Positions 1,001 to 62,742 of a DNA stretch of 64,000 nucleotides are shown here, piece after piece. The notes beneath the pieces are model-generated. The model saw only the letters and a list, made by a program, of their open reading frames with translations, was not told the origin of the DNA and did no database searches. Positions within the stretch are counted from its first letter, which is position 1; the number at the start of each line of letters is the position of its first letter. The stretch lies in the sequence record MG655270.1, one strand, 5' to 3'. Position numbers and translations under genes: made by a program.

Positions 1001-2689
1001 ATGGACCCGTTGCTCGAAACAGCTATAAAAAATACCATACCAAAAATGAATCCAGATATCTCTAATGGATTTGTAAAGCGAGAGCTAGACAAAGCACTTG
1101 AATATCTCAACAACGTCTTTGCCAGCGCCTTTGGTAGTTTGGGTTCCAACATTAAGTACATCGGGTATCAGCGTTGTCGTCCCGATGAAGAGTACCGTTT
1201 CAGTTTAAAGCGTAATGGCGGGGCAACAGCTTCGAAGGCACGTTATGAGCTGGCCCGGTCTGATGTGTTTCTCACCAAGTTCAACTTCACGGTCGATGGA
1301 AAAGCAACCAAGCCACTGCTGCTCTATGTGCCGTACTGTGATGACACTGGACTAATGCACCTGCGTGGGACAGCACACACCATCTCGCCTGTCTTGGAAG
1401 ATCCAGGGATCTCTGTGACACGGGATGGTTGTTTCTTTCGCGTGACCTGTGACAAGATCGTGGTGAAACGTACTGGCCATACGGTCTGTCGTGATACCAT
1501 GGACATCACACAAAAGCGTAAGCGGGTGCAGAAGCACATCAACGTACCGTGGGCGAAGATCTACCGTGCTAAGCAACAGAAAGCGAACTCAGCGAAGACC
1601 GCACCGGTTACCTCGCTGCCGCACTATCTGTTTGCGAAGTATGGCGTCACGCACACCTTTAAGAAGTATGCTGGTATGGATGTGGTGTTCGGGACTGAGT
1701 TGGATATCACACCTCAGAACTATCCTGACAATGAGTGGACACGGTTCTATTCCGCTAAACAAACCCATCCTAACAACAAGCGTCCGTCCCAAGAGTGGGT
1801 GCCAACGGCTGCAGCGTTAGCTGTCAGAACCACCGCACCGTCTCAGTTGGTGGATATCTTGGTAGCTGGCTACTTCTATGTCGCTGACTGTTATACCCAT
1901 GAATTCAATCCGATTCACTCTGATGAGCCAGATCATTGGCGTCTGATGATGGGTAAGATGGTCTTTAACAAGACGGTCAAGTATGTGCAGATGACAGAAT
2001 ACCTGGCACCGCACTTTGCCTCACTTGATACGTACCTGGACGACATCGCCAAAGAGAACCTGGCCGAAGAAGGGGTGTTGTGTGAAGACGTGTATGAGCT
2101 GATGACTTACATCATTGCAAACCTGGATCACATGATCAACACTGTGAACCTGGCTAGCATGTACAACAAGAAACTCGTTGTATTGCCGTATGTGTTATCA
2201 CCGATCATTCACGGGATCTTCTATACCAAGTTTAACCTGATGCAACAATGCAAGAAGCGTGCTGTTGATACCACCACTGGTGAAGAGATCATGGTGTTCA
2301 CGGAAGACACGTTATTTGATGTTCTTGGACGTAACCTGAAGCCGGAAGCGATTAACAAAGTGAAAGGGCCAGACCATGGCATGATTAGCTCTGTTGCAGC
2401 CCCAGGCGACAATAAGATGTTTAAGATAAATAACAAGATTACACTACAGCAAAATGCAACACAATCAGGTGGGCGTCGTAATGAATCACCGATGACCGAT
2501 GATTCGAAAGGGCTGGATGTCAGTATTGCAGACTGTGCATCGTATCTCCATATTACGAAACCCGATCCGACTGGCCGCTCTTTATTTAACCCCTTTAAGT
2601 TATTGGTACGTGATAAACTGCTTCCGTCCGTTAAATATGAAAAACTGTTTAACGTAACGCAGGCGATTATCTATCGTCGCAATATTTAG
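1001..2689 (+). CDS. non-virion RNA polymerase beta-like subunit, N-terminal part (phiKZ gp123-like)
   Basis: 562 aa. Sequence resembles the phiKZ-family split beta subunit (LLLYVPY, HTISPVLEDPG, LPHYLFAKYG). Position shortly before the portal block matches phiKZ-like gene order as recalled. Confidence 0.75.
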   Translation: MDPLLETAIKNTIPKMNPDISNGFVKRELDKALEYLNNVFASAFGSLGSNIKYIGYQRCRPDEEYRFSLKRNGGATASKARYELARSDVFLTKFNFTVDGKATKPLLLYVPYCDDTGLMHLRGTAHTISPVLEDPGISVTRDGCFFRVTCDKIVVKRTGHTVCRDTMDITQKRKRVQKHINVPWAKIYRAKQQKANSAKTAPVTSLPHYLFAKYGVTHTFKKYAGMDVVFGTELDITPQNYPDNEWTRFYSAKQTHPNNKRPSQEWVPTAAALAVRTTAPSQLVDILVAGYFYVADCYTHEFNPIHSDEPDHWRLMMGKMVFNKTVKYVQMTEYLAPHFASLDTYLDDIAKENLAEEGVLCEDVYELMTYIIANLDHMINTVNLASMYNKKLVVLPYVLSPIIHGIFYTKFNLMQQCKKRAVDTTTGEEIMVFTEDTLFDVLGRNLKPEAINKVKGPDHGMISSVAAPGDNKMFKINNKITLQQNATQSGGRRNESPMTDDSKGLDVSIADCASYLHITKPDPTGRSLFNPFKLLVRDKLLPSVKYEKLFNVTQAIIYRRNI

Positions 2690-8954: not shown

Positions 8955-11330
8955 ATGAATTTAAATGTGGACTATACAATTTACGTGGATAACACCAAGA
9001 AGCTTATCCGCACAATGGTCATTAATTCGGCTCAATCAGCTAATATAATTAACGGCCGTATGGATGGCTTGGGGTACGGTCGTGACATCTACGACAAGAG
9101 TACCTGGAAGTACTACATGAACATGGCCGGGATCTACCATCCGTCCAATGACCGGATGCAGGTGAAGTCACTCGATAACGGTCAGCTCATCGACTTTACC
9201 CGTGAGAACATGGAGATCCATGTCAGCACCAAACGCAGCTACCAGTACGGCACCGACTATTATAAAGCCCTGGTTGCGCAGTACCCGTATCAGATCGCGT
9301 TGATCAAGGGGATCTTAAACCCAATTGATCTCAGTGTCTCAACCACCGCCGATGACTGGCAGATCCTCTATTACGATAAGACGCTGGTAGAAGACGGTGA
9401 AGAGAACCTGATCCCCCGTTTCCAGGAGTGGGTCAATACCCTGATCACCCAGACCTATCTACCGGACTACGTCTACATCACCGAAGATCTGATGCACCAC
9501 TTCTATCTTTCCTTAATTGGTGGTTTTGGTCCTGGTGTGATCATGGGGATTCGGTTAGAGAACATCAAGACCAACCGGGCACACAGTTTCCATATCTGGT
9601 CGCATATTCTGTCGCATGCTGATATTGAGCAGTATCGCCCGTACCTGAACCGCAAACAGATCCTCTATCTGTATCGCAACATTGTGTGGCATACCCGCAA
9701 CCCAGGTGCACAATACTCCTTCCAGAAGATGATCGATGCCTTCTTAACGGAACGCCGCATCCCATTACAGTCGTACAACGCCCAGCACAACACCTCGAGC
9801 ATTCTGACCAAGATTAAACCCGAGGTGGAGTTCAAGCGTGAACTGCTGAACATGCAAGATGCGATCGCCAATGTGAACTATGTGCGTAGTACCCGTGAGA
9901 TCCTGGAAGATGAAGTGCCGCTGGCGAAGAACAACGCCGACGTGTACGAAGACCGGATCGGGGAAGTCATTCAGGATGTCGGGACCAACCGCAACAGTAA
10001 CCTCCCGACCAAAGTGCTGGAATCCAACATGCGGGATCTGTCTGACTCGCTGCCGTTCTCACACTCCCTGACATTACTGAACGAATGGGTGCGGTTGTCC
10101 TCTACGGGCATGTATACCGCGGTGATCACCACTACCAACCCCAATACCGGGCTGACCATGACCATGACGGTAAAGGAAGCGTTTATCCTTTATCTGTACG
10201 GTGTCTGGCAAAGTCACGGAGTTAACTTGGAGACGATCCCAACCTTCCGTGCCAACATGGTAATGAAGATCCCTCGGCCGCAGTTTGCGTTCTTAAAAGC
10301 CCAATACGGCTCGCAGCACGTCACCGACGAGTTCATCAAATACGCCCTGAATCTTTGTCCGGATATCCCGGCGATCATCTCGACAGAAACCTTCTATGCG
10401 AAGACGCTTGAGATTAATGCCGCGACCCAACTGCACCGGGATCTGTACAGCTACCGTAACCATTATCATGCGCGGGCAGAATTCGAAGCCCTGGCCTTTG
10501 GTTTCTACCAGGATCAGGATTGCGACATCAACTCCGGCATGACCTATAAGGAGTTCTTCAAACAGAAGGGGTGGGACTTCACTGACTTACCGCCGGAAGA
10601 GTGGGTGGTGTTCGCCAACAAGGTCTCCTCGATTGCCACCGGGTTGGATACGGCTAACCAGCAGAAGCTCGCGGATATTCAGCAAGCCATGTTGGGCCTG
10701 ACCATGCAGCTGTCCAGTTACACCATTCAAGTGATCAGGAAGATCAATGAAGAAGCGGTGGTGATGCTTGACTGGCCAACCTTGCGCGGGGGCGACATGC
10801 ACATGAAGGTCTATCAGCAGTGGCACTTGGTGGATAACCCTGTGCGACCGATCGATACCCACATGCGTGAGAAGAAGACTTACAACCTGATCCACGATTT
10901 CCCGAAAGGCCATAACTCGGTAGAGCGCAGCTGGCGCTTCTATATCGACACCGCACGGCAGTTAAGTAGTCAGGGGATCAACTCCCGTTACAACTATTTA
11001 AACGGCGCACGTATGCGGCTGTGGACGGCTGACGATGCGGCGGGTACCGAGAACGAGTTTGACCAGCAGATGGCCGTGAAAGATCTGCAAGGTCTCTGGA
11101 TTGACCCGTACGGCGATGCCCGTCCGCCGGCTGACTTCAGTGCAGAAGTGTTGAACGGATTGTGGACTGATCCGTTACCCGGGATTGCACCAATCGTTAG
11201 TAGCTTGGGTGGGTTGTGGATCGATGGTCCAAAGAGCAGTGGTTTTGATGAGGATCTCAACGGACTGCATGCTGAAGTACCTGCGGCATTACAAGCCTTA
11301 CGCAATACCCCGGGTGATAGCGCCACGTAA
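8955..11330 (+). CDS. large virion structural protein, probably baseplate (phiKZ gp128-like)
   Basis: About 790 aa, GGAG RBS, divergent from the portal, heads the structural cluster. Confidence 0.6.
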   Translation: MNLNVDYTIYVDNTKKLIRTMVINSAQSANIINGRMDGLGYGRDIYDKSTWKYYMNMAGIYHPSNDRMQVKSLDNGQLIDFTRENMEIHVSTKRSYQYGTDYYKALVAQYPYQIALIKGILNPIDLSVSTTADDWQILYYDKTLVEDGEENLIPRFQEWVNTLITQTYLPDYVYITEDLMHHFYLSLIGGFGPGVIMGIRLENIKTNRAHSFHIWSHILSHADIEQYRPYLNRKQILYLYRNIVWHTRNPGAQYSFQKMIDAFLTERRIPLQSYNAQHNTSSILTKIKPEVEFKRELLNMQDAIANVNYVRSTREILEDEVPLAKNNADVYEDRIGEVIQDVGTNRNSNLPTKVLESNMRDLSDSLPFSHSLTLLNEWVRLSSTGMYTAVITTTNPNTGLTMTMTVKEAFILYLYGVWQSHGVNLETIPTFRANMVMKIPRPQFAFLKAQYGSQHVTDEFIKYALNLCPDIPAIISTETFYAKTLEINAATQLHRDLYSYRNHYHARAEFEALAFGFYQDQDCDINSGMTYKEFFKQKGWDFTDLPPEEWVVFANKVSSIATGLDTANQQKLADIQQAMLGLTMQLSSYTIQVIRKINEEAVVMLDWPTLRGGDMHMKVYQQWHLVDNPVRPIDTHMREKKTYNLIHDFPKGHNSVERSWRFYIDTARQLSSQGINSRYNYLNGARMRLWTADDAAGTENEFDQQMAVKDLQGLWIDPYGDARPPADFSAEVLNGLWTDPLPGIAPIVSSLGGLWIDGPKSSGFDEDLNGLHAEVPAALQALRNTPGDSAT

Positions 11331-11363
11331 CCGGCATAATGAGGGGTCGTCACTGACCCCTCA
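11331..11363 (-). terminator. hairpin plus TTATGCCG element on the minus strand
   Basis: CCGGCATAA then TGAGGGGTC/GACCCCTCA. Confidence 0.65.
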
Positions 11364-11409
11364 AAAGTAATCCTATGTTTACACCACCTCTACGCCTAAG
11401 GAGAACCAC

Positions 11410-12285
11410 GTGCCTGCTAATCAGCCGATTCACGGTGAGGGTGACTATGTCGTAGACGTCGCATTGAGCTCTGCTGAGTTAGTGTATGGTTTGATTAACC
11501 ATGACAACAACACAGACTACACCTCATTGACGTTACGGTTAGGAACCCCGACTGTAAATACCAATGCACAGCACGATCGTAATACCCGTATCTTTGCCCA
11601 AACTCGTCCAGGCGCGCCGAAGCAGGGGTCAACGTATTTCTATTATGATCGTATTTCGCTGGCCTACTATCTGCAAAACTACCCTGACCTGGAAGTCGAC
11701 ATCACCGATGACATGCTCACCATGCGTGATCTGATTCCGTGGATGAACCAGACCTTTGGATTAGGGTTGGTTGCTGAAGATGTCCGGGCCGATTTAATTG
11801 ACCGTAGCCCGAACGCTGAAAACCGCTTTGCGATGTCAGCTGCCTCCCTGGCCTGGCAGGATTCGATCGTCTTAAAGATCAACATCCCACCGGTGGATAT
11901 TGCCACCTTGACCGGTGACTCGGTCTTTGATGCCATCGAAGTGGTGTCAGAACACCCACGCACTTACGGTCAGCTGTATGGCTACCAGGTTGACACCGCT
12001 GGTATGGCGGCGTTACTGACCGGTCTGCCAATTGGTAAGCTGAGTAATCTCAATGGTGAGAACCTCACGCAAGCATTGTCCACTGCTACTTCTGACTATT
12101 GGGCTTTCGATGCAACTCCAGTCGTCCGTAACCTCTATGGCGCTACTGTGCGCTTTAATGGTCGCAGTACTGACCAGGCCGTGTACCCCACTAAACCAGA
12201 CAACGCGTACATGGTAATCGTGGATATTGTTGAGAGTGAATGCCTGGAGTTCGAAGGCCCGTTGGTTCTCTACTACACCCGTTAA
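11410..12285 (+). CDS. virion structural protein, paralog family A
   Basis: AAGGAG RBS plus GTG; YFYYDRISL motif resembles 12301 and 14031. Confidence 0.6.
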   Translation: MPANQPIHGEGDYVVDVALSSAELVYGLINHDNNTDYTSLTLRLGTPTVNTNAQHDRNTRIFAQTRPGAPKQGSTYFYYDRISLAYYLQNYPDLEVDITDDMLTMRDLIPWMNQTFGLGLVAEDVRADLIDRSPNAENRFAMSAASLAWQDSIVLKINIPPVDIATLTGDSVFDAIEVVSEHPRTYGQLYGYQVDTAGMAALLTGLPIGKLSNLNGENLTQALSTATSDYWAFDATPVVRNLYGATVRFNGRSTDQAVYPTKPDNAYMVIVDIVESECLEFEGPLVLYYTR

Positions 12286-12300
12286 CCGAGGAATCGCATT

Positions 12301-13119
12301 ATGTTACAACGCATTCTGCAAAAGACGGCTAACGAGATTATCGTTGAACCGTTTAACCTGGCTTTTAACACCAACTTAAAAGCTGCCAATTTTGAGCTGA
12401 AGGATGTCGGTCCTACAACCGGTGGAAAAGATACCCAGGCCACCTTGTCAGTGATCGACACCACCTCCGGGTATAAAGGTGAGCGTCCGTTCACGTATAA
12501 CCGTCTGGATGCCACAGAACTCTTTTACGGTGTGCCGAAGTTCTTCCCAATGGGCTCGGCTGACATTGATGAATACTCTGTCGTTGGGATGCTGGCCTTA
12601 CGTTATGGTCTGAAGCTTGACATCAACCATATCGCTAACGTCGCCATCACTGCCGGTAAAGCCGTGGTAACGTTTGCAGATTCATCACCGATCATCAAAG
12701 GCAGCGTGCAGTTTGACTTCTACGATGAAGCCATCGATTTGGAAGAACTGATTGCTGATCCAGAAATCGGCGTGCTGGAGATGCCAGAGCGTACTGAGAA
12801 GCCGAACGTGACGTATTACAGTTACGCGCACGACATGACGTACTGTAAAGCGTTTGTTCCGGGTATGGCGGTGGGTTCACTGGCAACACAGGAACTGGCT
12901 GACGCAGTAGCGAACATCACCGGTGATCCGTGGGTGCTGGCAGACGACACTACCACTGAATACAACCTGGCCGGTGCTGAGCTTGTCTACAACGGTAACA
13001 CCACCACTGCGAATGCCCAGGGCTATCCCGTCAATGACGAATACGCCATGGTGGCTTTGTTTAAATTAACAGATTCATGTAATAATTTTAGTGGTCTGCT
13101 AATGGTTAACATGAACTAA
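12301..13119 (+). CDS. virion structural protein, paralog family A
   Basis: PFTYNRLDA ... LALRYGLKL motif shared with neighbours. Confidence 0.6.
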   Translation: MLQRILQKTANEIIVEPFNLAFNTNLKAANFELKDVGPTTGGKDTQATLSVIDTTSGYKGERPFTYNRLDATELFYGVPKFFPMGSADIDEYSVVGMLALRYGLKLDINHIANVAITAGKAVVTFADSSPIIKGSVQFDFYDEAIDLEELIADPEIGVLEMPERTEKPNVTYYSYAHDMTYCKAFVPGMAVGSLATQELADAVANITGDPWVLADDTTTEYNLAGAELVYNGNTTTANAQGYPVNDEYAMVALFKLTDSCNNFSGLLMVNMN

Positions 13120-13139
13120 TCTGTTGAAAAGGAACAATA

Positions 13140-14015
13140 ATGAAACGTAATGTCAGATCGCATGCAGGGAACATGTTGCAGGTCGCCCAGATGTTGGGTA
13201 TTGCACATGTGGTTCAGGAGCACACCACGCTGAATGAAAAGTTCAATGTGCTGCCTGATCAGATCCCGCAGACCGGTCGCCCTAACATGCAGTACTTCTG
13301 CATTGGCTTTGGCGGACACAAAGGTATTCTCGGTAAGAACAATACCTTCCTGTCCACATCGATCGACCACTACCCGGATCATGCGGCGCTCTATAAACAC
13401 ATCCCGTTTGTGTTGCGTGAGATCGGTAATGACCTCACTGCAGATCAGCGCGCGAAGTATCGTCTGCGCAGCATCATCACGCTGGATGACGGCAGTCGCT
13501 ATATCGCCTACTACCTGAAGAAGATCGAACTCAGTAATGTGGTGGTGCGTTCTCAAAAGAACACACGCGATGAAGCCGGTTTAATCACCACCTCTGACTA
13601 TGTGCCGGATGCCTCGGTACTGAACCCACAACAACCTGAACTCAACACCAACAACATCGACCAGGTAGTCACCTCCACGACCTTCTTGTCAGCCAACGCT
13701 GAACTGGATCTGTCGCTGAATGAGCTTGACTGTTCAGAGCTGCTCGATGTCGCCCGCATCCTTTATAAAGATGAAGCGTATGCCCTGGTGTCGGAGTACG
13801 GTCTGGTGGCAGGTATCGATGTCCCTGCTCAGGGTTCAACCGGTGCTGGCGGAACCATTCAGTATACTGAAGTGGTGGCGGCACAGATCGTGGACTTCAT
13901 GACCAACCGTGGCTCAGGTGCGGATGATGACGATAAAGGCATCACCTGTCTGGTCAACTACGGCGCTACTGAGCCGCTGTTAGCTGACAGTGGTGCAAAC
14001 GCAACAACCGTCTAA
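13140..14015 (+). CDS. conserved virion structural protein (tail/baseplate)
   Basis: TTLNEKF...YFCIGFGGH motif typical of phiKZ-like structural proteins; context. Confidence 0.55.
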   Translation: MKRNVRSHAGNMLQVAQMLGIAHVVQEHTTLNEKFNVLPDQIPQTGRPNMQYFCIGFGGHKGILGKNNTFLSTSIDHYPDHAALYKHIPFVLREIGNDLTADQRAKYRLRSIITLDDGSRYIAYYLKKIELSNVVVRSQKNTRDEAGLITTSDYVPDASVLNPQQPELNTNNIDQVVTSTTFLSANAELDLSLNELDCSELLDVARILYKDEAYALVSEYGLVAGIDVPAQGSTGAGGTIQYTEVVAAQIVDFMTNRGSGADDDDKGITCLVNYGATEPLLADSGANATTV

Positions 14016-14030
14016 TGACACGGGGGTGAC

Positions 14031-14900
14031 ATGAACATTCTGGGTAAAGATCCACAACAGTTGATCAAAGAACTCGCTGCCGGTCACAACAATGTCACGT
14101 TGGTACCAGGGGCGACGAAAGTGGTTAACTTTCAAAACCTGGCTGGTACGGTTGGTATTGACGCACAGGCGGATATTGTCCCGGCTGACCCGACCGTCTA
14201 TTACCGTAAGAAGACCATCCAGTTTGGCAAGATCGATCTGTCCAAGCATTGGTTGAATCAGCGTCTGACGATCCCACTGCAGGCGAACTCAACCAGCCAC
14301 AGCATCTTACCGCAACTGATCAAACGTTATGGTCTGAAACTGTCCACCGACGATTTGGTGTTGACCACGGTAGACACCAGTAAAGATATCTGGGAATTAC
14401 CGATTCGGGTGAAAGCCACCTCGTGGGTCTTTAAGAACACGCTGGACAACATCATCGTCTACGCCACCGATGTCAGCACCGATCTGCAGTATGTGATCAA
14501 ACGCCCATCGTTGACTGGGCTGGCGTATCCTTCTGCCGATACCACCAAGATGCAAGGCCCGCTGTTAAGCTACGGTATGCATTACAGTGTGCATACCGGA
14601 CAGAACGAAGCCCTCCGCAATGCGAAGGTCGGTTACAAGATGATTGTAGCCTCTGACGATGACTGGGCGATTGCGGATCTGCTGTCGGACTATACGGGTC
14701 TGGCATGGTCGTTTAAACAGACTGGACCAAGCCTGTACAATGCCGAAGTGGTGTATAATGGCGTTGCAACGAATGTACCGATCACCTATTCCCATCTTGA
14801 TCGCAATAGCGCCACGAACTTCTTAATTTTGAAGCTCAGTGGTGTTGGTGATGTGGGTGGGTATGTGGCTATTGGTTACACGATCGAAGTTGATCCGTAG
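14031..14900 (+). CDS. virion structural protein, paralog family A
   Basis: TIQFGKIDL ... LIKRYGLKL motif shared with 12301. Confidence 0.6.
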   Translation: MNILGKDPQQLIKELAAGHNNVTLVPGATKVVNFQNLAGTVGIDAQADIVPADPTVYYRKKTIQFGKIDLSKHWLNQRLTIPLQANSTSHSILPQLIKRYGLKLSTDDLVLTTVDTSKDIWELPIRVKATSWVFKNTLDNIIVYATDVSTDLQYVIKRPSLTGLAYPSADTTKMQGPLLSYGMHYSVHTGQNEALRNAKVGYKMIVASDDDWAIADLLSDYTGLAWSFKQTGPSLYNAEVVYNGVATNVPITYSHLDRNSATNFLILKLSGVGDVGGYVAIGYTIEVDP

Positions 14901-14910
14901 CAGTGTATAA

Positions 14911-15555
14911 ATGAAGGGTGGGGCTTCGGCTCTGCCCTTAGGGAGTCTTATGATGGTGTTGCAAGATGGACGCCCGGTGGAAGAGTTACTGCAGGTCTCC
15001 ATTGACCCCGGAACTGATACCGTCGGTGTTACGTTATTGGGATTGCATCCGATCACCCTTGAGATGACCTGGAAGGAATCCTTTACGTTGTATGGATCAT
15101 TGCTTAATTACCGCTCAGAGCTCGTGTTCCAGGAAGACCGGAATCGTGATGCACGTTTAAAGGGCCTCACTGATGCCCTGCTGCGTTATCTCTGTACGGT
15201 ACGGCCTCACGTAGTGGTGTTTGAAGATAACTTCTTACGTCACTCCCCACAGGCCTTTAAAGCACTGATCGAATCGGTGGAAGCCATTAAGCGTGCAGTC
15301 TGGGGGTATAACCCATACTTACCGTTCTATGAGATCTCTCCGATGCAGGCGAAAGGTGCCGTGAATGCGATTGCTCCTCGCGGACAAAAACATGATAAGG
15401 AGCTAGTGCGTAAGGGACTGATGAACTATCCACGTTTACAAATCCCTCATGCTATTTTGCAGACACTCTCTGAGCACGCAGTTGACTCCGTCGCCATCGG
15501 TATCTACGGCCTGGAACAATTGTCGCTCGCATTGAGTGCTGCTCATTGGAGATAA
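14911..15555 (+). CDS. ruvC: RuvC-like Holliday junction resolvase
   Basis: RNase H-fold acidic motifs SIDPGT, VVFEDNF, HAVDSVAIG. Confidence 0.8.
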   Translation: MKGGASALPLGSLMMVLQDGRPVEELLQVSIDPGTDTVGVTLLGLHPITLEMTWKESFTLYGSLLNYRSELVFQEDRNRDARLKGLTDALLRYLCTVRPHVVVFEDNFLRHSPQAFKALIESVEAIKRAVWGYNPYLPFYEISPMQAKGAVNAIAPRGQKHDKELVRKGLMNYPRLQIPHAILQTLSEHAVDSVAIGIYGLEQLSLALSAAHWR

Positions 15556-36197: not shown

Positions 36198-36518
36198 ATG
36201 GTACGCGCCGATACAACCATCGCAACAAAAGGAAAGGTTGTGCGCTTGAGTGTCACCGGCTACGGGGTGATGAGCATGGATGGGGTTATGGTGGATGACC
36301 CTAAGCAGCGCGTGAACATGCGCACTGCGCACCCCAGCCAAAGTTGTTACCCACTACCGGGTGAAAAGAAATGGTACGAAGTTAAACGGGTAGAACAGAC
36401 AGCCAATGGTTGGTGTTATCCGGTGGTCGGGTTATTTAAGTATCCCGGTGACGCCACAAACTTTATTCAATCCCTTATTCAGAAATACAAACTCGATCAG
36501 GAAAAACCTCATGAGTGA
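36198..36518 (+). CDS. hypothetical protein
   Basis: Abuts upstream stop. Confidence 0.65.
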   Translation: MVRADTTIATKGKVVRLSVTGYGVMSMDGVMVDDPKQRVNMRTAHPSQSCYPLPGEKKWYEVKRVEQTANGWCYPVVGLFKYPGDATNFIQSLIQKYKLDQEKPHE

Positions 36519-36990
36519 AATTACCGTAAAAGTTGTTGGTCCAATTCAAGCGGGTAAAACTGCAATCGCCTCTTTATTGGACAATGCCCTGCGTGCGAAT
36601 GGCATCACAGCAAAGATCCAGTCTGACTCGGCGTTGTCTTATCTGCGTGAGGCTAAGAACCACGTCCCAACCAATGTCAGCGTCACGATCATTGACGGCA
36701 CCACTGACGGTGTACGTGAATTTGGTAACAGTGATGATGTCATTCCAATCCGCGGTCGCATCATGGGTATCGAAGTCCAACCGGTCAAATACACCCCCGC
36801 TGAAGCGACAGTGGTTGCACTGGCCGATGCTAACGCCTTTGCCGTGTATCGCCGTGAATGGCTGAATAATGCTTCGCTGGCGGTCTGGGTGGGTGACTTC
36901 CATGTTGAGAGCGATGCCATTGACTGCGCCAACACTCTGGCTGAGAAATACGGCACCGCCGCTGACTTCCTTTATAAGGCAGGTTTGTAA
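36511..36990 (+). CDS. hypothetical protein with N-terminal P-loop-like motif
   Basis: VKVVGPIQAGKT. Confidence 0.7.
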   Translation: MSEITVKVVGPIQAGKTAIASLLDNALRANGITAKIQSDSALSYLREAKNHVPTNVSVTIIDGTTDGVREFGNSDDVIPIRGRIMGIEVQPVKYTPAEATVVALADANAFAVYRREWLNNASLAVWVGDFHVESDAIDCANTLAEKYGTAADFLYKAGL

Positions 36991-36992
36991 CC

Positions 36993-37262
36993 ATGCATCA
37001 GTTTACTCCTGAGATGAAAGAAACGTTAAACGAACTCGAGCGTGAGTTAGCCCACATTCGTTTAACGCAACCGAACCGGATTAACACACTGATCAAAACC
37101 AAGTGTTTTAGCCTGGCCCGGAAAACAAAGTCACCGCACGTCAAACGGGTTCTGCAGTCAATTACTGCTACCCCGTTGTCGGTTGTAAAGTTAGAAGAAG
37201 TTCTGAAGCTTTACCATGAAGTGGATAGTGGTGAAGTGGAACTCTCTATCCAGCAGGTTTGA
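36993..37262 (+). CDS. hypothetical protein
   Basis: Operon packing. Confidence 0.65.
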   Translation: MHQFTPEMKETLNELERELAHIRLTQPNRINTLIKTKCFSLARKTKSPHVKRVLQSITATPLSVVKLEEVLKLYHEVDSGEVELSIQQV

Positions 37263-37735
37263 GGGGGGTGGAATGGCGTTGGCTTTCGATTCTTAACGAG
37301 TCGGACTTCAACGCAATGACCTTCCTCGCGGTGAAACAATACCACGCTCAGTCTATCTACTGGAAACGACTGGGTGTGGATTGGAACACCCCTAAGCCTG
37401 AGACTGTCCACAAGTTTATGGCGACCTATGTGAAGAATGCCCCGATCAAACTGATGATCCGTAACGCGGATGCGGTGATGATTGGGTTTGCACTACTCAG
37501 TACCGAACGCACGGATAAAGGACTTGTCTGTCACATCGACGAGGTGTTTATCGACGAACCCTATCGTAATAAGGGTATTGGTAAGAAAACGCTTATTAGG
37601 ATTAAACGGCACGCCGAAAAACAGAAGATCGCTGCATTGACCTTGAACGTCAGTGCTGCCAATCCCGTTCGCGCACTTTATGAACGTATGGGGTTTGAGC
37701 CAGTGCAGGTGAAATACCAGATGCGGCTGGGTTGA
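37259..37735 (+). CDS. GNAT-family acetyltransferase (start may be GTG 37268)
   Basis: VFIDEPYRNKGIGKK acetyl-CoA motif A; NPVRALYERMGF motif B. Confidence 0.88.
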   Translation: MRGVEWRWLSILNESDFNAMTFLAVKQYHAQSIYWKRLGVDWNTPKPETVHKFMATYVKNAPIKLMIRNADAVMIGFALLSTERTDKGLVCHIDEVFIDEPYRNKGIGKKTLIRIKRHAEKQKIAALTLNVSAANPVRALYERMGFEPVQVKYQMRLG

Positions 37736-37753
37736 CCTAGTGAGGAGTTTGTC

Positions 37754-38308
37754 GTGTCTATCTATCGCATTGAAATCCACCCGAACGCCACCAGTGGTCT
37801 TACGGTACTTGTCAGCACGGCTGAGGGTATCCGGCGGTTGGCATTAGTGGAAGGGTGTTCGGAACAGGGAGCGTTTGTAGTTATACGGGATAAGGTTATA
37901 CGGTTCTATCATTGGGATGTGCGACGGGAAGAAGACCGGGCGTTGTTCAATGCAGACGGTTTGGCACGGAACACACTGGTTGGGATCGAAGCCTTGTTGT
38001 GCAAGAACAAAGATTGGGGGTTTGGCGGGACGCGCTTCCTGGCGTTTATGACAGGGTGCTTAAAACACCGCTGGAACGAGTACAGCAACACGCGGGGGTT
38101 TATCCGAGCAGAACATCATCATTTGGTGCACACGCGCGTAGATCGCCGTGAGGAGCGTGTATTCGTGACATTAGGGGACTGGGCGCAACACGCACCGTGG
38201 AACTTACGCCTGGACCGTAAAACCCCCTATTCAACGAAATTCAGAGAGGTGGTTGAACGCCTCGTCCGTCAGGAGTTCGATTTACCGGCGGTCTTTGACA
38301 TTAATTAA
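37754..38308 (+). CDS. hypothetical protein
   Basis: GAGGAG RBS plus GTG. Confidence 0.7.
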   Translation: MSIYRIEIHPNATSGLTVLVSTAEGIRRLALVEGCSEQGAFVVIRDKVIRFYHWDVRREEDRALFNADGLARNTLVGIEALLCKNKDWGFGGTRFLAFMTGCLKHRWNEYSNTRGFIRAEHHHLVHTRVDRREERVFVTLGDWAQHAPWNLRLDRKTPYSTKFREVVERLVRQEFDLPAVFDIN

Positions 38309-56937: not shown

Positions 56938-58089
56938 ATGCGTCAGTATTTGGATGGGATTCGTTACATCTTTGAGAACGGGTCACAACGAGGGGATCGC
57001 ACCGGGGTAGGTACGTTGTCGGTGTTCTCGATGAAGCAGACTTACGATCTGCGTCTGGGATTCCCACTGGTCACCAGTAAGAAAGTGCGTATCGATTTTA
57101 TTATCGAAGAGCTCATCTCCTTCCTGTCGGGTAATCCCGATATGCCGGGTGTGGGTATCTGGGATGATTGGCGTGTTAAAGACGAAGTCTCTCGTGAAGT
57201 CCCGTTAGAGAACCACGAGCGTTTAAAACTCTGGGTTGAGAAGTCGGACCTGAAGTATAACGTTGCTTACCTTCAACTCAATGCGATGGGTTCTGTCGAA
57301 GCGGGTCATCGTTTCCTGGATGAGCAAGGGATTCCACGTAACAGAAAAGAAGTACTGGTAGCAGAAGGTGCACTCAATGCACCCTATGGGCCAGCGTGGC
57401 GTGCGTGGAAAGGTCGTCAGGGCGAAGTGCATGATCAGATCGGTTATCTGCTCAAGCTGCTTAAAAACAATCCTACGAGCCGTCGTATGCTATTGTCTGC
57501 TTGGGACCCGGCGAACATGCCGGATGAGTCTATCAGCCCGCAGGATAACATCATTGATGGCAAGCCACCTCTGACTCCGTGTCATTGGGCGTTTGAGCTG
57601 TACACTGACGAAATCCTGGCAGAGGAACGCCTTGATTGGGTCGAAGCTAACGCACCTAGCCTCTGGGAAGACTACAATGATCGTTCAGGACGTGGTCAAT
57701 GGTTAGGCGACACAGACAGTAAGCGCCTTCATGAATTCCTGGACGAAGCCGGCGTACCGAAGTATTACCTGGATATGAAGTATCACCAACGTTCCTGTGA
57801 CTATATGGTTGGCGTGCCGTATAACATCGCCAGCTATGCGGTGTTGCAGCACATGTTCGCCGCCACCTGTAACATGATCCCGCGGATACTGGAAGCGGAT
57901 ATGACTAACATCCATATCTACAACTTCCACAAAACCAATGCGGTCATGCAGGCCAGTCGCAGCCCACGCGCACTACCCACTCTGAAGGTACTCGCCGCTC
58001 ACGATAAGTTGGAAGACTATACGTTGGAAGACTTTGAACTCGAAGGTTATGATCCGCATCCTTTTATTAAATATGAAAGAGCGGTCTGA
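56938..58089 (+). CDS. thyA: thymidylate synthase ThyA with two insertions
   Basis: DRTGVGT, PLVTSKK, SRR.LLSAW, TPCH catalytic Cys, YHQRSCD..GVPYNIASY, HIY. Confidence 0.96.
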   Translation: MRQYLDGIRYIFENGSQRGDRTGVGTLSVFSMKQTYDLRLGFPLVTSKKVRIDFIIEELISFLSGNPDMPGVGIWDDWRVKDEVSREVPLENHERLKLWVEKSDLKYNVAYLQLNAMGSVEAGHRFLDEQGIPRNRKEVLVAEGALNAPYGPAWRAWKGRQGEVHDQIGYLLKLLKNNPTSRRMLLSAWDPANMPDESISPQDNIIDGKPPLTPCHWAFELYTDEILAEERLDWVEANAPSLWEDYNDRSGRGQWLGDTDSKRLHEFLDEAGVPKYYLDMKYHQRSCDYMVGVPYNIASYAVLQHMFAATCNMIPRILEADMTNIHIYNFHKTNAVMQASRSPRALPTLKVLAAHDKLEDYTLEDFELEGYDPHPFIKYERAV

Positions 58090-58487: not shown

Positions 58488-58493
58488 CGCATA

Positions 58494-58521
58494 CGGAGGG
58501 GTCATTCCCTCCGCTATGCCG
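58494..58521 (+). terminator. hairpin plus CTATGCCG
   Basis: CGGAGGG-GTCATT-CCCTCCG. Confidence 0.7.
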
Positions 58522-58562
58522 ATTAAGTTTTTAACAAAGTTTACTGCAGATCTTTTCAGACC

Positions 58563-58570
58563 TATATCAC
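58563..58570 (+). promoter_or_regulatory. candidate early promoter TATATCAC
   Basis: CAGACCTATATCACG, near-identical to the 40015-40029 site. Confidence 0.5.
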
Positions 58571-58619
58571 GTCGGTGAATAACCTTTCACTAATTAACCA
58601 ATCCGTAAGGAGTTTTATC

Positions 58620-59996
58620 ATGGCTGCATTAAAATCTAAAGTTGAACTGTTTCACTGGTATCAGGAACTGAAAACTGAATTTAAAACCGGCAAGATTACC
58701 GTGTTCGAATTTGAGCGGCAAGTGCTCAGCGAAATTCTTTCCCTGACCGATACTGGTAAAACACCATCTACTGCCAAAATCAGTCTGGTAGTGGACATCC
58801 TTAATTCTGTGGTTTTTGATCATGTGTTTACCGCAGACGGTATCATTGACCTGGACAACATGCTCGCTCGTGAACACGTACGCAACATTTCGGAATTGAC
58901 GGCAGCACGCAATAACTTTATTACCATACAAGCCCAGGCCCGTCTGAACAAAGAAAAGGAACAGACTGCGAAACCAGCAGAGCAGAAGGCGTTTGCCAAG
59001 TTTCCAACGAAAGAAGAGCTCGAATATTGGGTTAATGCCAGAAAGCTATTCCGTTATGGTAACCCCAATACGCTCGGCACTGAAGCATACCAGGAGGTTG
59101 TCAAATACTGGCATCTGGTCGATAAATATCTGGGTACATTAAAACTGGAACTGGATCACACCGACCCTAACTACGTCGATAACATCCTGTTGATTGACTA
59201 CTTTGTATCGTTGGTCGCCAAGCAAGAGGTTCCTGAGGAAGAACGCAGGCATCTGAAAGACACACTTAGCAGTCTATATGCGTGCCCCATTAAAACCCCA
59301 CACATCGATGCATTTGTCGAACGTGACCAACACCCCCTTCCAGTTAAGCCAAAACAACCACCCATCGCGCAACAAGCCATCGACCGCGCTATTGCCTGGC
59401 GTGAAGAGGAAACCAAAACAAACCATCAGCAAAAAGACATATTACGAGAATTCGCCGATCAATACTGTCCGGTAATGGTGGCCAAGCAACATGCCACTCA
59501 GCAGTTGTTTGATTTCGTTGCTCGTGCGGTGAAACGTGTCTTGACCGCCATTGCTCAGCCAAACAACCCGGAAGACGCCGAGATGCTGGCAAAAGGTCAT
59601 GCCATCAACATTCTCAATGTTAAGCATGGTGTAATTGGTGTCAGTACCACGATTACCAGAAACGGTCTGGTCAAGTTACGCATCTTCGCTGAACGTGAAC
59701 TATGTAACGAGGACTACGGTATTCCGACTCTGTCGTATAATCAAGTCCGTCAATCACCTCATGCAACGTTCAGCATACCAATGCCGGCACTGATAGATGG
59801 GTTCATTAACATGTGGGATATCCCTAATCAGGCCCCTCGCCATATGCATAATAGCGTAGGCGGTATGTTGGGTAATCCCTATCCGTTACAGCAGCTTGAT
59901 GGTTTGATGTCAGCTATTGCAAGAGAAACAGCCGAGTACGGCGTTACGCCTACTTATGGCATGATCGAAGACAGCATGATTGTTGTGCTGCATTAA
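58620..59996 (+). CDS. modular hypothetical protein with duplicated helical domain shared with 60060
   Basis: AAGGAG RBS; WYQELK..F.TG.I and LIDYFVSLVAKQEVPEE motifs. Confidence 0.75.
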   Translation: MAALKSKVELFHWYQELKTEFKTGKITVFEFERQVLSEILSLTDTGKTPSTAKISLVVDILNSVVFDHVFTADGIIDLDNMLAREHVRNISELTAARNNFITIQAQARLNKEKEQTAKPAEQKAFAKFPTKEELEYWVNARKLFRYGNPNTLGTEAYQEVVKYWHLVDKYLGTLKLELDHTDPNYVDNILLIDYFVSLVAKQEVPEEERRHLKDTLSSLYACPIKTPHIDAFVERDQHPLPVKPKQPPIAQQAIDRAIAWREEETKTNHQQKDILREFADQYCPVMVAKQHATQQLFDFVARAVKRVLTAIAQPNNPEDAEMLAKGHAINILNVKHGVIGVSTTITRNGLVKLRIFAERELCNEDYGIPTLSYNQVRQSPHATFSIPMPALIDGFINMWDIPNQAPRHMHNSVGGMLGNPYPLQQLDGLMSAIARETAEYGVTPTYGMIEDSMIVVLH

Positions 59997-60002
59997 TTCA
60001 CA

Positions 60003-60034
60003 CGGGGAGGTTTCCCTCCCCCTTTTATTTTTTA
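60003..60034 (+). terminator. intrinsic terminator
   Basis: GGGGAGG-TTTC-CCTCCCC followed by a long T tract. Confidence 0.75.
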
Positions 60035-60059: not shown

Positions 60060-60761
60060 ATGAACAAAGAAACTTATACTACCTGGTACAATGGATTAAA
60101 AGAAAGATTGGCGACTGGGCACATTAATCAAGAACACTACGAGACACTTATTGTTGACAATCTAAGTTCATTGATTACTCATTTCTTCAATAGTCGATAC
60201 GACGATGGTCATATGTCTCTGGAGGAGCATTTTGCGTTAGTTAATCATTATTTCGAACTGGTTGCTGATGCAGAAATATCAGAACGCAGTGCCATGCTCA
60301 TGGTACGTTCTGTAGCTAGCAGTATTCAAAAGCTACCAGCGGCTAAAGCCTTCGCAGAGAAACATAACACTCCGGCGCCGTCAATTAAAGAAATTCTTGG
60401 TAGTCGACCTGGTTTACTGCGTAAGCATGCTGCCAGCACGACCGAGAAGATGATAGGGTGTCCGGTGATCACCCAGGCCAACGAACCTGAGAACGAAGTA
60501 ACCATTGACTTACCCTGGAAATTGGCATTGCACGTTTACAAAGGGTTCCTGGTAAAGGCGCTGATGTCAAAGCACGGATATAAATACAGTGATGCGTATA
60601 ACTACATTACTGATCATCAGAACAAATACGACGAACTCTTGGCAGAAGTCCTCAACAACATTATTGCTAATGAGGAATCGCATCTGGTGTCGGTAGGTGG
60701 CGGCATCACTGCAGCGGGTACTGGTCTGGTGGTAAGCGGGATTATTAAGCCGGAGGAGTGA
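60060..60761 (+). CDS. helical domain fused to an RNA polymerase beta-prime-like fragment
   Basis: aa ~108-205 align in register with the beta-prime segment GKQGRFRQ...GRSVIT...LPKKMALELFKPF...ILDEVI. Confidence 0.7.
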   Translation: MNKETYTTWYNGLKERLATGHINQEHYETLIVDNLSSLITHFFNSRYDDGHMSLEEHFALVNHYFELVADAEISERSAMLMVRSVASSIQKLPAAKAFAEKHNTPAPSIKEILGSRPGLLRKHAASTTEKMIGCPVITQANEPENEVTIDLPWKLALHVYKGFLVKALMSKHGYKYSDAYNYITDHQNKYDELLAEVLNNIIANEESHLVSVGGGITAAGTGLVVSGIIKPEE

Positions 60762-61321
60762 TGAAAGGAGAGATAGAGACACGCTTCAGAAGACACTACG
60801 GCAACCACATTAAACGGGGTAGTGATATCGCAGTGCCTTTATACCACATTAGTCTACAGAATGACTTGGAGGGGCTATGGCGACCTAAAGCCCCTGACTC
60901 GCCATTTGATATTCCGAAGAAACCCAACATCATTACTGAAATGCCGCTCCCGCGTATCTGTGTAGCACCATCTATCGAACAGTGCTTCTGGGCAATCTAT
61001 CCCAATATCTCTAAGCTCTTTGAAGAGGAAGAATACGCAGCGGTTTGTTTTGCGGTTTATCAACCGATTCTGCATGCCGGTATTGCTGTCGTGGATACCA
61101 GTACGTTAACGCAATGCCGACTAGTGCACGATGCACATATTACCGGCGAGCATTGGTTACTTAGTGATACCACCATGTGTGTGATCGACTTTATTCAGGT
61201 TAATAACACCTCACACGGCGAGTTCGTAAAGTTCCATCCGTTTAATACCCCGGTTGGTAACGAATGGGAGCTCGCCCCTAAAAATGTTGTTTATCATTCA
61301 CTTAAATTAACGGAGTTGTAA
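60758..61321 (+). CDS. hypothetical protein, possible ADP-ribosyltransferase-like fold
   Basis: LYHIS / PRICVAPS / TGEHW motif spacing. Confidence 0.45.
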   Translation: MMKGEIETRFRRHYGNHIKRGSDIAVPLYHISLQNDLEGLWRPKAPDSPFDIPKKPNIITEMPLPRICVAPSIEQCFWAIYPNISKLFEEEEYAAVCFAVYQPILHAGIAVVDTSTLTQCRLVHDAHITGEHWLLSDTTMCVIDFIQVNNTSHGEFVKFHPFNTPVGNEWELAPKNVVYHSLKLTEL

Positions 61322-61325
61322 ATCC

Positions 61326-61970
61326 ATGGTAACTGCTAGAAAAGCTAATAAGACCTTAGGTGAGCACGCAGTGGCTCATGAGGCAGTAACACGCTTAGGT
61401 AGCAACAAGAAAGTCAAACCAGTTAAACCGCTTTGGACACTGGAGAACATCGAGGACAATCTGGTTGGTCAAGGCATCCTTGCCTACTTGAAACGCCACA
61501 CGTCGTTATCGATCCGTGATATCAACACCGCGGCTAACCGCCTGACGAAGATTGCTGATTCAGATATAAAGGAAGGGAAAGCGCGTGATTACGTGGCACG
61601 AGTTATTGGGTACAACAATTACGACGCTCTCAACGTCACCGTTCGTGCAGCGGTACCTGTGCGCAATCATGTACAACGTCGTAAAGCAAATCAGCCGGTC
61701 ACAGAGTTGTTGATAGAAGACGAAGAACTGCCGCCGGTAACACGTACTGAAATCAACCCCTTGGTGATGTTAGCCCTACAGCGTGAGATCTCTAAACGCG
61801 GCTTTCGTCTACTGGGTAAGAACTACCGGGCTTTCGTTAACAAGGATAACCCCGAGCACACCTTTACGTTGATGCAGGCGTATAACTACCTTGCCAAACA
61901 ACTGGGTTATCCGGATTATCACTCTATGCCCCGTCAATACCCAATCATTAACTTGCGCTACGTCGATTAA
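61326..61970 (+). CDS. protein with two 'glyoxalase superfamily'-type small helical repeats
   Basis: ARDYVARVIGYNNYDAL and AYNYLAKQLGYPDYHSM. Confidence 0.55.
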   Translation: MVTARKANKTLGEHAVAHEAVTRLGSNKKVKPVKPLWTLENIEDNLVGQGILAYLKRHTSLSIRDINTAANRLTKIADSDIKEGKARDYVARVIGYNNYDALNVTVRAAVPVRNHVQRRKANQPVTELLIEDEELPPVTRTEINPLVMLALQREISKRGFRLLGKNYRAFVNKDNPEHTFTLMQAYNYLAKQLGYPDYHSMPRQYPIINLRYVD

Positions 61971-61992
61971 CCTATTGTAAGGAATAAAGAAC

Positions 61993-62742
61993 ATGACAAC
62001 GACTTTCCCGAAAGAGATGAATGCTGCTTTCCATCCTGATAACGAACAAACCACCCAGCTGTGCAAAACGATCCAGCAGATCAGCGGGGTGGAGATCAAA
62101 CGTGTACATGTGGTGATGGCGATCCACCATTACAAACAAAACGATGCGGCACATCAGCCTGACCACATGCTGGCGGTCTTAGCAGAAGCAGCCCACATCA
62201 TCCAGTCGTTTCCTGACCTGGAGAAATGGCGCACCCAGATCATGTTAGGGTGTCTGTTCCATGACACCCACTGTCACATCGATCGGGATATGCACCACCT
62301 GCTAGGCGCCGAACATGCCCAAGAGGCATTACTGGAGTATGCGTGTGGTTATGGGATGTCACGTGCGGATGTCTACCTGATCAGTCAGGCCGTACTGGAG
62401 CATCGGGCTTCCTGGAAGTACCCGCGTATTAACCCTGTATCCAACGCTGTGGCGTCTGCAGATCGTGGCTACCCTGATCTAAAGAAATACATCCGTCGTG
62501 CTGTACAGTACCGTTACAAGCGCATGGCAGTCATCAACATGAACACCATCATCGATGAGTCGATCGAACACATGGTAGAGAAGTTCGGTGATGGCGGTTA
62601 TGCCTGGGAAAGCTACCCGACGTATGCAGCGGTGATGCACGGTGATGCGATTCAACAAGTGAAGCAACAACTGCGCAGTAAAGAAGGAAAGGCACAGCTC
62701 AAGGAGTACGCTGAACTCCACTTTGATGAGTGGGTAGAATAA
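61993..62742 (+). CDS. HD-domain phosphohydrolase
   Basis: HQPDH, LFHDTH, HHLLGA, EH, ASADR motifs. Confidence 0.88.
   Translation: MTTTFPKEMNAAFHPDNEQTTQLCKTIQQISGVEIKRVHVVMAIHHYKQNDAAHQPDHMLAVLAEAAHIIQSFPDLEKWRTQIMLGCLFHDTHCHIDRDMHHLLGAEHAQEALLEYACGYGMSRADVYLISQAVLEHRASWKYPRINPVSNAVASADRGYPDLKKYIRRAVQYRYKRMAVINMNTIIDESIEHMVEKFGDGGYAWESYPTYAAVMHGDAIQQVKQQLRSKEGKAQLKEYAELHFDEWVE

Follow-up and report, generated by a model that had tools for sequence, protein, structure and literature searches.

The question that this locus raises is why a jumbo phage would keep a gene resembling a single internal piece of an RNA polymerase (RNAP) subunit. The gene, gp72 (MORTIMER_72), lies in the window that we analyzed, bases 1-64000 of Erwinia phage vB_EamM_Mortimer (MG655270.1, 273.9 kb, Agricanvirus ray; 100% identity by megablast), a RAY/Ea35-70-like jumbo phage after which 16 related Erwinia jumbo-phage records rank in a megablast search with this 64,000-nucleotide stretch. 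Its product is listed as 'hypothetical protein' in the record, is 100% identical to the product of RAY gp70, and belongs to a PHROGs family of its own (phrog_11276). An initial annotation, made from the letters alone, had read residues 108-205 as a captured fragment of the β′ subunit and had proposed a decoy, an inhibitor or an extra polymerase subunit. The open reading frame (ORF) is present at 60060..60761 with the translation given there, and residues 108-205 do correspond to nucleotides (nt) 60381-60674. The gene can be divided as follows:

60060..60761, plus strand: gp72, 233 amino acids (aa), very probably a non-catalytic partial paralog of the N-terminal β′ subunit (β′N) of the non-virion RNAP (nvRNAP); phrog_11276 match at E 8e-160.
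60060..60380, plus strand: N-terminal helical module, aa 1-107, predicted by AlphaFold to be all helical with a local confidence score (pLDDT) of ~90.
60381..60674, plus strand: β′N-like segment, aa 108-205, with profile homology to gp228 289-385 and phiKZ gp55 290-385.
60678..60758, plus strand: Gly-rich hydrophobic tail, aa 207-233, SHLVSVGGGITAAGTGLVVSGIIKPEE, with near-invariant alignment columns and a nonsynonymous-to-synonymous polymorphism ratio (pN/pS) of 0.06-0.09.

Sequence profiles place the central segment within the β′N subunit of jumbo-phage polymerases, with a likeness that chance does not explain. gp72 matched PHROG 2987, the jumbo-phage nvRNAP β′N family, with E 4e-17 (residues 54-205 against profile positions 226-368 of 478); this covers about 143 of the 478 positions, short of a full-length match, whereas gp228, the β′N subunit of Mortimer itself, matches positions 2-478. 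In searches against PDB, the single gp72 sequence retrieved phiKZ gp55 (7ogp_A; E 1.6e-5, 111-204 against 292-385), and a profile of the 12-sequence gp72 family retrieved the same chain with E 6e-10, as well as AR9 nvRNAP β′ with E 8e-5. Profile-profile alignment (hhalign) against 28 canonical β′N subunits gave a probability of 99.5% (E 2e-22), with gp72 108-205 equivalent to gp228 289-385, and weaker alignments to β′N extend back to residue ~54-68 of gp72. At E <= 1e-3, an exhaustive hmmsearch of 1.84 billion representatives returned 228 proteins. Of the 150 listed, the majority are β′N proteins of 420-510 aa, aligned at about residues 260-370, and the shorter matches that we examined are truncated canonical β′N genes. 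The resemblance is to the phage and not the host type of β′, as the best matches are phrog_2987 and phiKZ gp55, while bacterial β′ reaches only E 0.5 with the gp72 family. Because gp228 255-448 corresponds to E. coli β′ 292-473, the segment maps transitively to about E. coli β′ 330-420, in agreement with the position that the initial annotation had given. By homology, it takes in the stretch around switch 2, the opening two strands of the catalytic double-psi β-barrel and the next helical hairpin.

The alignment terminates just before the RNPxL...NADFDGD part found in gp228 and phiKZ gp55, and the DxDGD (NADFDGD) magnesium-binding loop, which is present in gp228, phiKZ gp55 and the virion β′N-like subunit gp168, is absent. 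gp72 also has no counterpart of the four canonical Zn-binding Cys columns of β′N (C72, C74, C87 and C90 in gp228), its one Cys being non-conserved, and no part of the β′ clamp. The canonical arginines of switch 2 and the first barrel strand have fared unevenly in the gp72 family, with one present in 12/12 members, one in 8/12 and one in 0/12. Since the zinc cysteines, RNPxL and DxDGD are missing and part of the switch-2 basic residues has been lost, gp72 cannot be a catalytic polymerase subunit, and the earlier description of a β′-derived fragment devoid of catalytic residues holds. Conversely, R121, V136, I137, P152, W153 and L168 are retained in all 12 family members.

The gene is also clearly maintained. 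The ORF is intact in all relatives, the homologs form 11 clusters at 55-98% identity, and gp72 is kept with synteny in 8/8 loci examined (55-100% identity). Codon analysis of eight orthologs yielded pN/pS = 0.27-0.44 for the body of the protein and ~0.06-0.09 for the tail, and this purifying selection argues that gp72 is a functional gene. On the strength of these sequence comparisons, gp72 very probably represents a third copy, conserved but non-catalytic, of a single internal slice of the nvRNAP β′N subunit.

This evidence for β′ likeness comes from sequence profiles and not from the fold, because a Foldseek search of the AlphaFold model of gp72 against PDB and BFVD yielded no significant match except its own ortholog. 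The best polymerase matches were phiKZ gp55 chains (E 0.2-0.9, probability 0.8-0.99). In the model, residues 116-150 are poorly predicted between confident flanking helices. A side match of the same search was BFVD I1VXK4, a small unnamed viral protein (84 aa; 83 columns, probability 1.00, template-modeling (TM) score 0.64 by target length, E 0.11), which might be a short β′N-like or helical-module protein of a different phage.

The next question is whether gp72 supplies something that the phage polymerases lack. Two of the RNAP genes serve as reference points:

1001..2689, plus strand: gp2, nvRNAP β-like N-terminal subunit, by annotation (phrog_2943, E 8e-204).
36423-37910 of locus L004, record positions 186423-187910: gp228, nvRNAP β′N, equivalent to RAY gp223.

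The RNAP genes of Mortimer are gp2, gp168, gp169, gp228, gp254, gp255 and gp277, a full set that agrees with that of RAY, for which four named nvRNAP subunits plus virion RNAP subunits have been described (PMC10299810). Only gp2 among the canonical RNAP genes lies within the window, 57 kb from gp72, and its RAY counterpart, gp002, localizes to the phage nucleus (PMC10299810). gp228 aligns to phiKZ gp55 21-494 (E 1.6e-67) with no gap in the segment, so that it carries its own copy together with NADFDGD, and gp168 likewise has its own switch-2-like stretch and DxDGD. By these sequences, both phage polymerases are complete without gp72. A scan of all phage ORFs found nothing else like gp72 or its segment, and gp71 and gp73, its immediate neighbors, are unrelated to β′N; when gp72+gp73 or gp71+gp72 were tried as degenerate β′N pieces, hhalign probabilities were 0.2-0.3%. 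The case that the initial annotation had named as its refutation, a normal split subunit completing a shortened β′, was thus tested against the whole gene set and not found, and gp72 emerges as an extra copy.

Regarding the origin of this copy, the gp72 family profile scores 19.6 bits against gp228 of the same phage and 40-55 bits against the β′N subunits of other phages. In a bootstrapped neighbor-joining analysis of 98 columns, the gp72 family was monophyletic in 100/100 replicates and never sister to gp228, within a comparison set that is biased towards the best matches of gp72 and over an alignment too short to name a donor. Given the low score and the absence of a sister relationship, a recent internal duplication of gp228 is not supported, and we regard such an origin, as far as the sequences tell, as unlikely. 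In the 1.84-billion-representative search, gp72-like proteins make up only one 50%-identity cluster. As a separate observation, gp228 is itself somewhat atypical in the segment, with 30% identity to other β′N subunits compared with 36% among those others, and with an Arg after the conserved Pro where 25/28 β′N subunits carry Trp.

Outside the segment, gp72 does not detectably resemble β′. The N-terminal 107 residues alone gave an hhalign probability of 1.4% against β′N, in keeping with the earlier view of an unrelated helical module, and the tail gave 0.2%, so neither part could be upheld as diverged β′N. Instead, the first ~40 residues are shared with the neighboring gp71 (hhalign E 1.2e-5, probability 81%), a motif that we found in no other ORF of the phage. 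The tail is unique within the phage proteome and almost invariant in a family that is otherwise 55-73% identical. Its low pN/pS is accompanied by free variation at synonymous sites (pS ~0.5), which argues that selection acts on the peptide and not on the DNA; conservation as a DNA or RNA element was rejected on the same grounds, and there was no Rfam match. AlphaFold predicts no helix for it (pLDDT < 30). Residues 209-229 form the most hydrophobic stretch of gp72, with 21% glycine and small-xxx-small spacing at G214/A218/G222/S226. Its Kyte-Doolittle hydropathy, 1.48 when averaged across 19 aa and about 1.7 across 21 aa (calculated by hand), is borderline for a membrane helix. The stretch leaves only four residues to the end of the protein in 11/12 members, and one ortholog continues for 37 more, partly acidic, residues after the tail. 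Two further readings of the tail were discarded. A Rossmann-type or sugar-kinase Gly-rich nucleotide loop rested on an NCBIfam N-acetylglucosamine kinase match of 16 bits (E 0.005, where the cut-off is 380 bits), a chance hit on low-complexity sequence without a surrounding domain; and a module shared with protein P0012 dissolved when P0012 proved to be a chimeric gene model drawn over degraded fragments of phage origin in a non-phage contig of 4.7 Mb.

The genomic setting of gp72 comprises the following features:

58575..59996, plus strand: gp71, annotated with 473 aa, always upstream of gp72 in relatives.
60004..60031, plus strand: terminator-like hairpin GGGGAGG-TTTC-CCTCCCC with T-run, between gp71 and gp72, from a scan and the sequence; the hairpin itself spans 60004-60021.
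60761..61321, plus strand: gp73, 186 aa, whose start overlaps the gp72 stop, as in translational coupling.
61326-61970, plus strand: gp74, in the conserved cassette downstream of gp72.
61993-62742, plus strand: gp75, HD-type phosphohydrolase, in the conserved cassette downstream of gp72; gp74 and gp75 together form a block at 61326..62742.

All relatives examined share the gene order ThyA - gp70 - gp71 - gp72 - gp73 - gp74 - HD phosphohydrolase, and the overlap of the gp72 stop with the gp73 start recurs in 7/8 loci, with one small ORF in between in the remaining locus, L008. This translational coupling, the near-invariant tail and the N-terminal motif shared with gp71 were not part of the initial annotation. 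The early-like promoter that it had placed ahead of gp72 could not be confirmed: a conserved terminator hairpin lies before the gene, and the ~38-nt spacer contains no motif common to all relatives. The hairpin between gp71 and gp72 is kept in 6/8 relatives, and a promoter-like TTTTAA-N5-8-TACTG, which occurs only upstream of gp71 and gp72 (2 matches against 0.11 expected), is lost in diverged relatives. Searches of gp70-gp75 against Pfam, PADLOC and NCBIfam gave nothing useful; gp72 had no Pfam match, gp71 had no PDB or Pfam match and no β′N similarity, and gp73 had no Pfam, NCBIfam or PDB profile match. gp73 is well conserved and is confidently modeled by AlphaFold (pLDDT 87, predicted TM score (pTM) 0.84), and its only non-noise Foldseek neighbors are ADP-ribosyltransferase/NADase folds at E 0.09-0.7 and TM 0.3-0.4, below significance. 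Its invariant residues include R65, S84, D124, H126 and E130. Homologs of gp73 at 35-42% identity occur on short metagenomic contigs, from which we conclude that it is more widely spread than gp72.

We propose, tentatively and with a probability of roughly 0.35, that, within the gp71-gp72-gp73-gp74 cassette, gp72 serves as an adaptor that binds other proteins or as a regulatory pseudo-subunit. The retained β′ surface would bind whichever protein normally contacts that face of β′N in the phage nvRNAP, with the β-like subunit or the sigma-like fifth subunit as candidate partners. In phiKZ, assembly requires the sigma-like gp68, which touches gp55 as well as the β-like gp71-73 (PMC8287921). gp72 may be tied to partners in the cassette, such as gp73, or to a membrane by its invariant tail and by the N-terminal motif that it has in common with gp71. 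Because the two barrel strands and the tail are co-conserved, the tail might fold back onto the strands and replace the missing half of the barrel, giving a remodeled half-barrel; that residues 116-150 are not confidently folded alone fits a piece needing a partner or the tail. The pattern of retention within the family, where structural positions are kept and nucleic-acid-type arginines are relaxed, counts for an adaptor. A more specific version, in which the catalytically dead β′ slice docks on the phage transcription machinery or its sigma-like subunit and controls assembly or the temporal program, perhaps tethered through its tail to the gp73 enzyme or to an early-infection membrane, seems unlikely as a whole.

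Several observations weigh against the adaptor proposal. Besides the missing structural match, identity between gp72 and Mortimer gp228 in the segment is only 22% (22-27% to canonical β′N in general), so interface residues may not be kept, and many residues that are invariant only in the gp72 family lack conservation in canonical β′N, which may point to a new role outside RNAP. Only Agricanvirus-like phages, a single genus-level clade, carry the family, and the gene sits in a variable, accessory part of the genome. We found no published functional, proteomic or localization data on the family, nor any proteomics of RNAP purified from these phages: the text and Table 3 of the RAY/Deimos-Minion lysate proteomics paper do not name 'gp70' or 'gp72', and the ortholog is not among the 24 RAY proteins that have been localized (PMC10299810).

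Another reading is an exapted scaffold, in which the β′ piece is a structural remnant and gp72 cooperates with gp71, gp73 and gp74 as part of an accessory host-takeover or counter-defense module unrelated to transcription, with gp73 perhaps an enzyme using nicotinamide adenine dinucleotide (NAD). The conserved cassette, the gp72/gp73 coupling, the N-terminal motif common to gp71 and gp72, the departure of the invariant residues from canonical β′N, the lost arginines and the accessory-region location (PMC10299810) all point this way, as do the structural neighbors of gp73. However, those neighbors fall short of significance (E >= 0.09, TM 0.3-0.4) and find no backing from profile searches, no cassette member has a PADLOC or Pfam match, and the β′ core positions, hydrophobic and kept by all 12 members, show that the fold matters while remaining silent on the partner. 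We hold this scaffold role to be possible, if doubtful. A membrane-tethered module, with the invariant tail as a glycine-zipper-like anchor that places the β′-like part on the early infection vesicle or the inner membrane, is less plausible and in our view rather improbable. It draws on the hydrophobicity of residues 209-229, their small-xxx-small spacing and their position four residues from the end in 11/12 members, and a preprint describes the early vesicles of Chimalliviridae as membrane-bound and transcriptionally active (bioRxiv 10.1101/2023.09.20.558163). Yet the hydropathy is borderline, no helix is predicted, one ortholog has 37 further residues after the tail, and a glycine content of 21% also fits short β-strands with turns.

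The two remaining explanations fare worse. A decoy for a host defense sensor that recognizes phage β′N, as the initial annotation had suggested, appeals only to the general logic that protein-sensing defense against jumbo phages exists (PMC12931631) and to the narrow, accessory distribution of gp72. The sole published jumbo-phage sensor trigger that we found, that of Avs5, is JADA and not an RNAP subunit (PMC12931631), there is no PADLOC-related signal, and gp72 is less like its own gp228 than like the β′N of other phages, the opposite of what a decoy needs. The decoy idea thus found no support, and we give it very little credence. That gp72 is a normal split subunit, or what a third β′N gene has left behind as a decaying pseudogene, would accord with the variously split β and β′ genes of jumbo phages (PMC7598289) and with gp72 being a slice only. 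Against this stand the complete gp228 and gp168, with no shortened β′ gene elsewhere in the genome, the fact that gp71 and gp73 are not β′ pieces and that no other phage ORF resembles gp72 or the segment, and the purifying selection on an ORF intact in all relatives; this explanation appears scarcely tenable.

The β′ homology itself is not new. Prichard et al. (2023) listed Goslar gp188 and phiKZ gp055 as homologous to two RAY genes, gp223 and the identical ortholog of gp72, gp070, in one core-gene entry (PMC10299810, Fig. 2 legend, Table S3), and AH06 gene 78, which is 55% identical to gp72, is annotated 'DNA-directed RNA polymerase subunit beta-prime'. These sources give the name only; the partial, non-catalytic nature of the protein, its tail, its link to gp71 and gp73, its selection and its origin are not described there. 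Such fragments are absent from a review of jumbo-phage RNAPs (PMC7598289).

Compared with known β′ proteins, gp72 shares with phiKZ gp55 and PHROG 2987 (PDB 7OGP/7OGR/8QUE chain A) a segment homologous in register, including the core LLRK, VIT, LPW and a conserved Leu, but it differs from that family in its N-terminus, its unique tail and the absence of zinc cysteines, RNPxL, DxDGD and clamp. The segment is likewise homologous to AR9 nvRNAP β′N (PDB 7S00/7S01 chain d; E 8e-5) and, weakly, to the RpoC1/gamma subunit. AR9 β′N, cyanobacterial or plastid RpoC1/gamma and gp72 are all products of split β′ genes; the first two are halves with a catalytic role that stop only past the barrel and its DxDGD loop, whereas gp72 ends before that loop. 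T7 Gp2, T4 AsiA and phiKZ gp68 are small non-catalytic polymerase binders, and any likeness of gp72 to them would concern a possible mode of action only. To our knowledge, none of the three derives from a polymerase catalytic subunit, and we know of no sequence relation to gp72.

Nucleus-forming jumbo phages have two split, alpha-less RNAPs whose assembly and regulation are poorly understood, and a non-catalytic β′ piece under selection offers a natural probe of the β′N surface used for protein contacts. Should gp72 bind the polymerase or its sigma-like subunit, it would represent a new type of transcription regulator, and as a pseudo-subunit it would be a first instance of a phage regulator made from part of a catalytic subunit of a multisubunit RNAP. 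Should it not bind polymerase, it would be a clear case of an essential-enzyme fragment captured for another use in a phage accessory cassette. In either event, the label 'RNA polymerase β′ subunit', as applied in AH06, is unsuitable, and 'β′N-like domain protein without catalytic site' would be a better description.

Some minor observations concern the flanking genes. For gp71, the GTG at 58575 is probably misannotated as the start and the true start is likely the ATG at 58620, because all orthologs start at the equivalent ATG after a strong Shine-Dalgarno sequence. The ~105-nt leader upstream (window 58490-58619), which follows a terminator hairpin at 58496-58513, is strongly conserved in eight relatives whose gp71 proteins are only 33-55% identical; its conserved blocks include TATGCCGAT, CTGCAGA and GTGAAT, with GTAAGGAG before the ATG. 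We found no conserved RNA fold past the hairpin and no Rfam match, and the leader is likely a promoter or protein-binding region. The thymidylate synthase gene is intact in Mortimer (56938-58089), and in AH06 (locus L007, 775-2769) it is split in two by an HNH homing endonuclease gene; AH06 also has two additional ORFs between its gp71 and gp72 orthologs.

Finally, degraded pieces of the Agricanvirus cassette occur at ~9200-15100 of locus L009 (GCA_054859325.1, contig JBTAPL010000082.1; 4.7 Mb, 41% GC), a contig with intron-type gene models and retroelement neighbors. The gp72-like copy there consists of the last ~50 codons, the gp74-like copy has at least three frame changes, and the gp75-like copy retains the N-terminal part only. 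Either these pieces are DNA of phage origin within what is probably the assembly of a eukaryote, or they result from a chimeric assembly.

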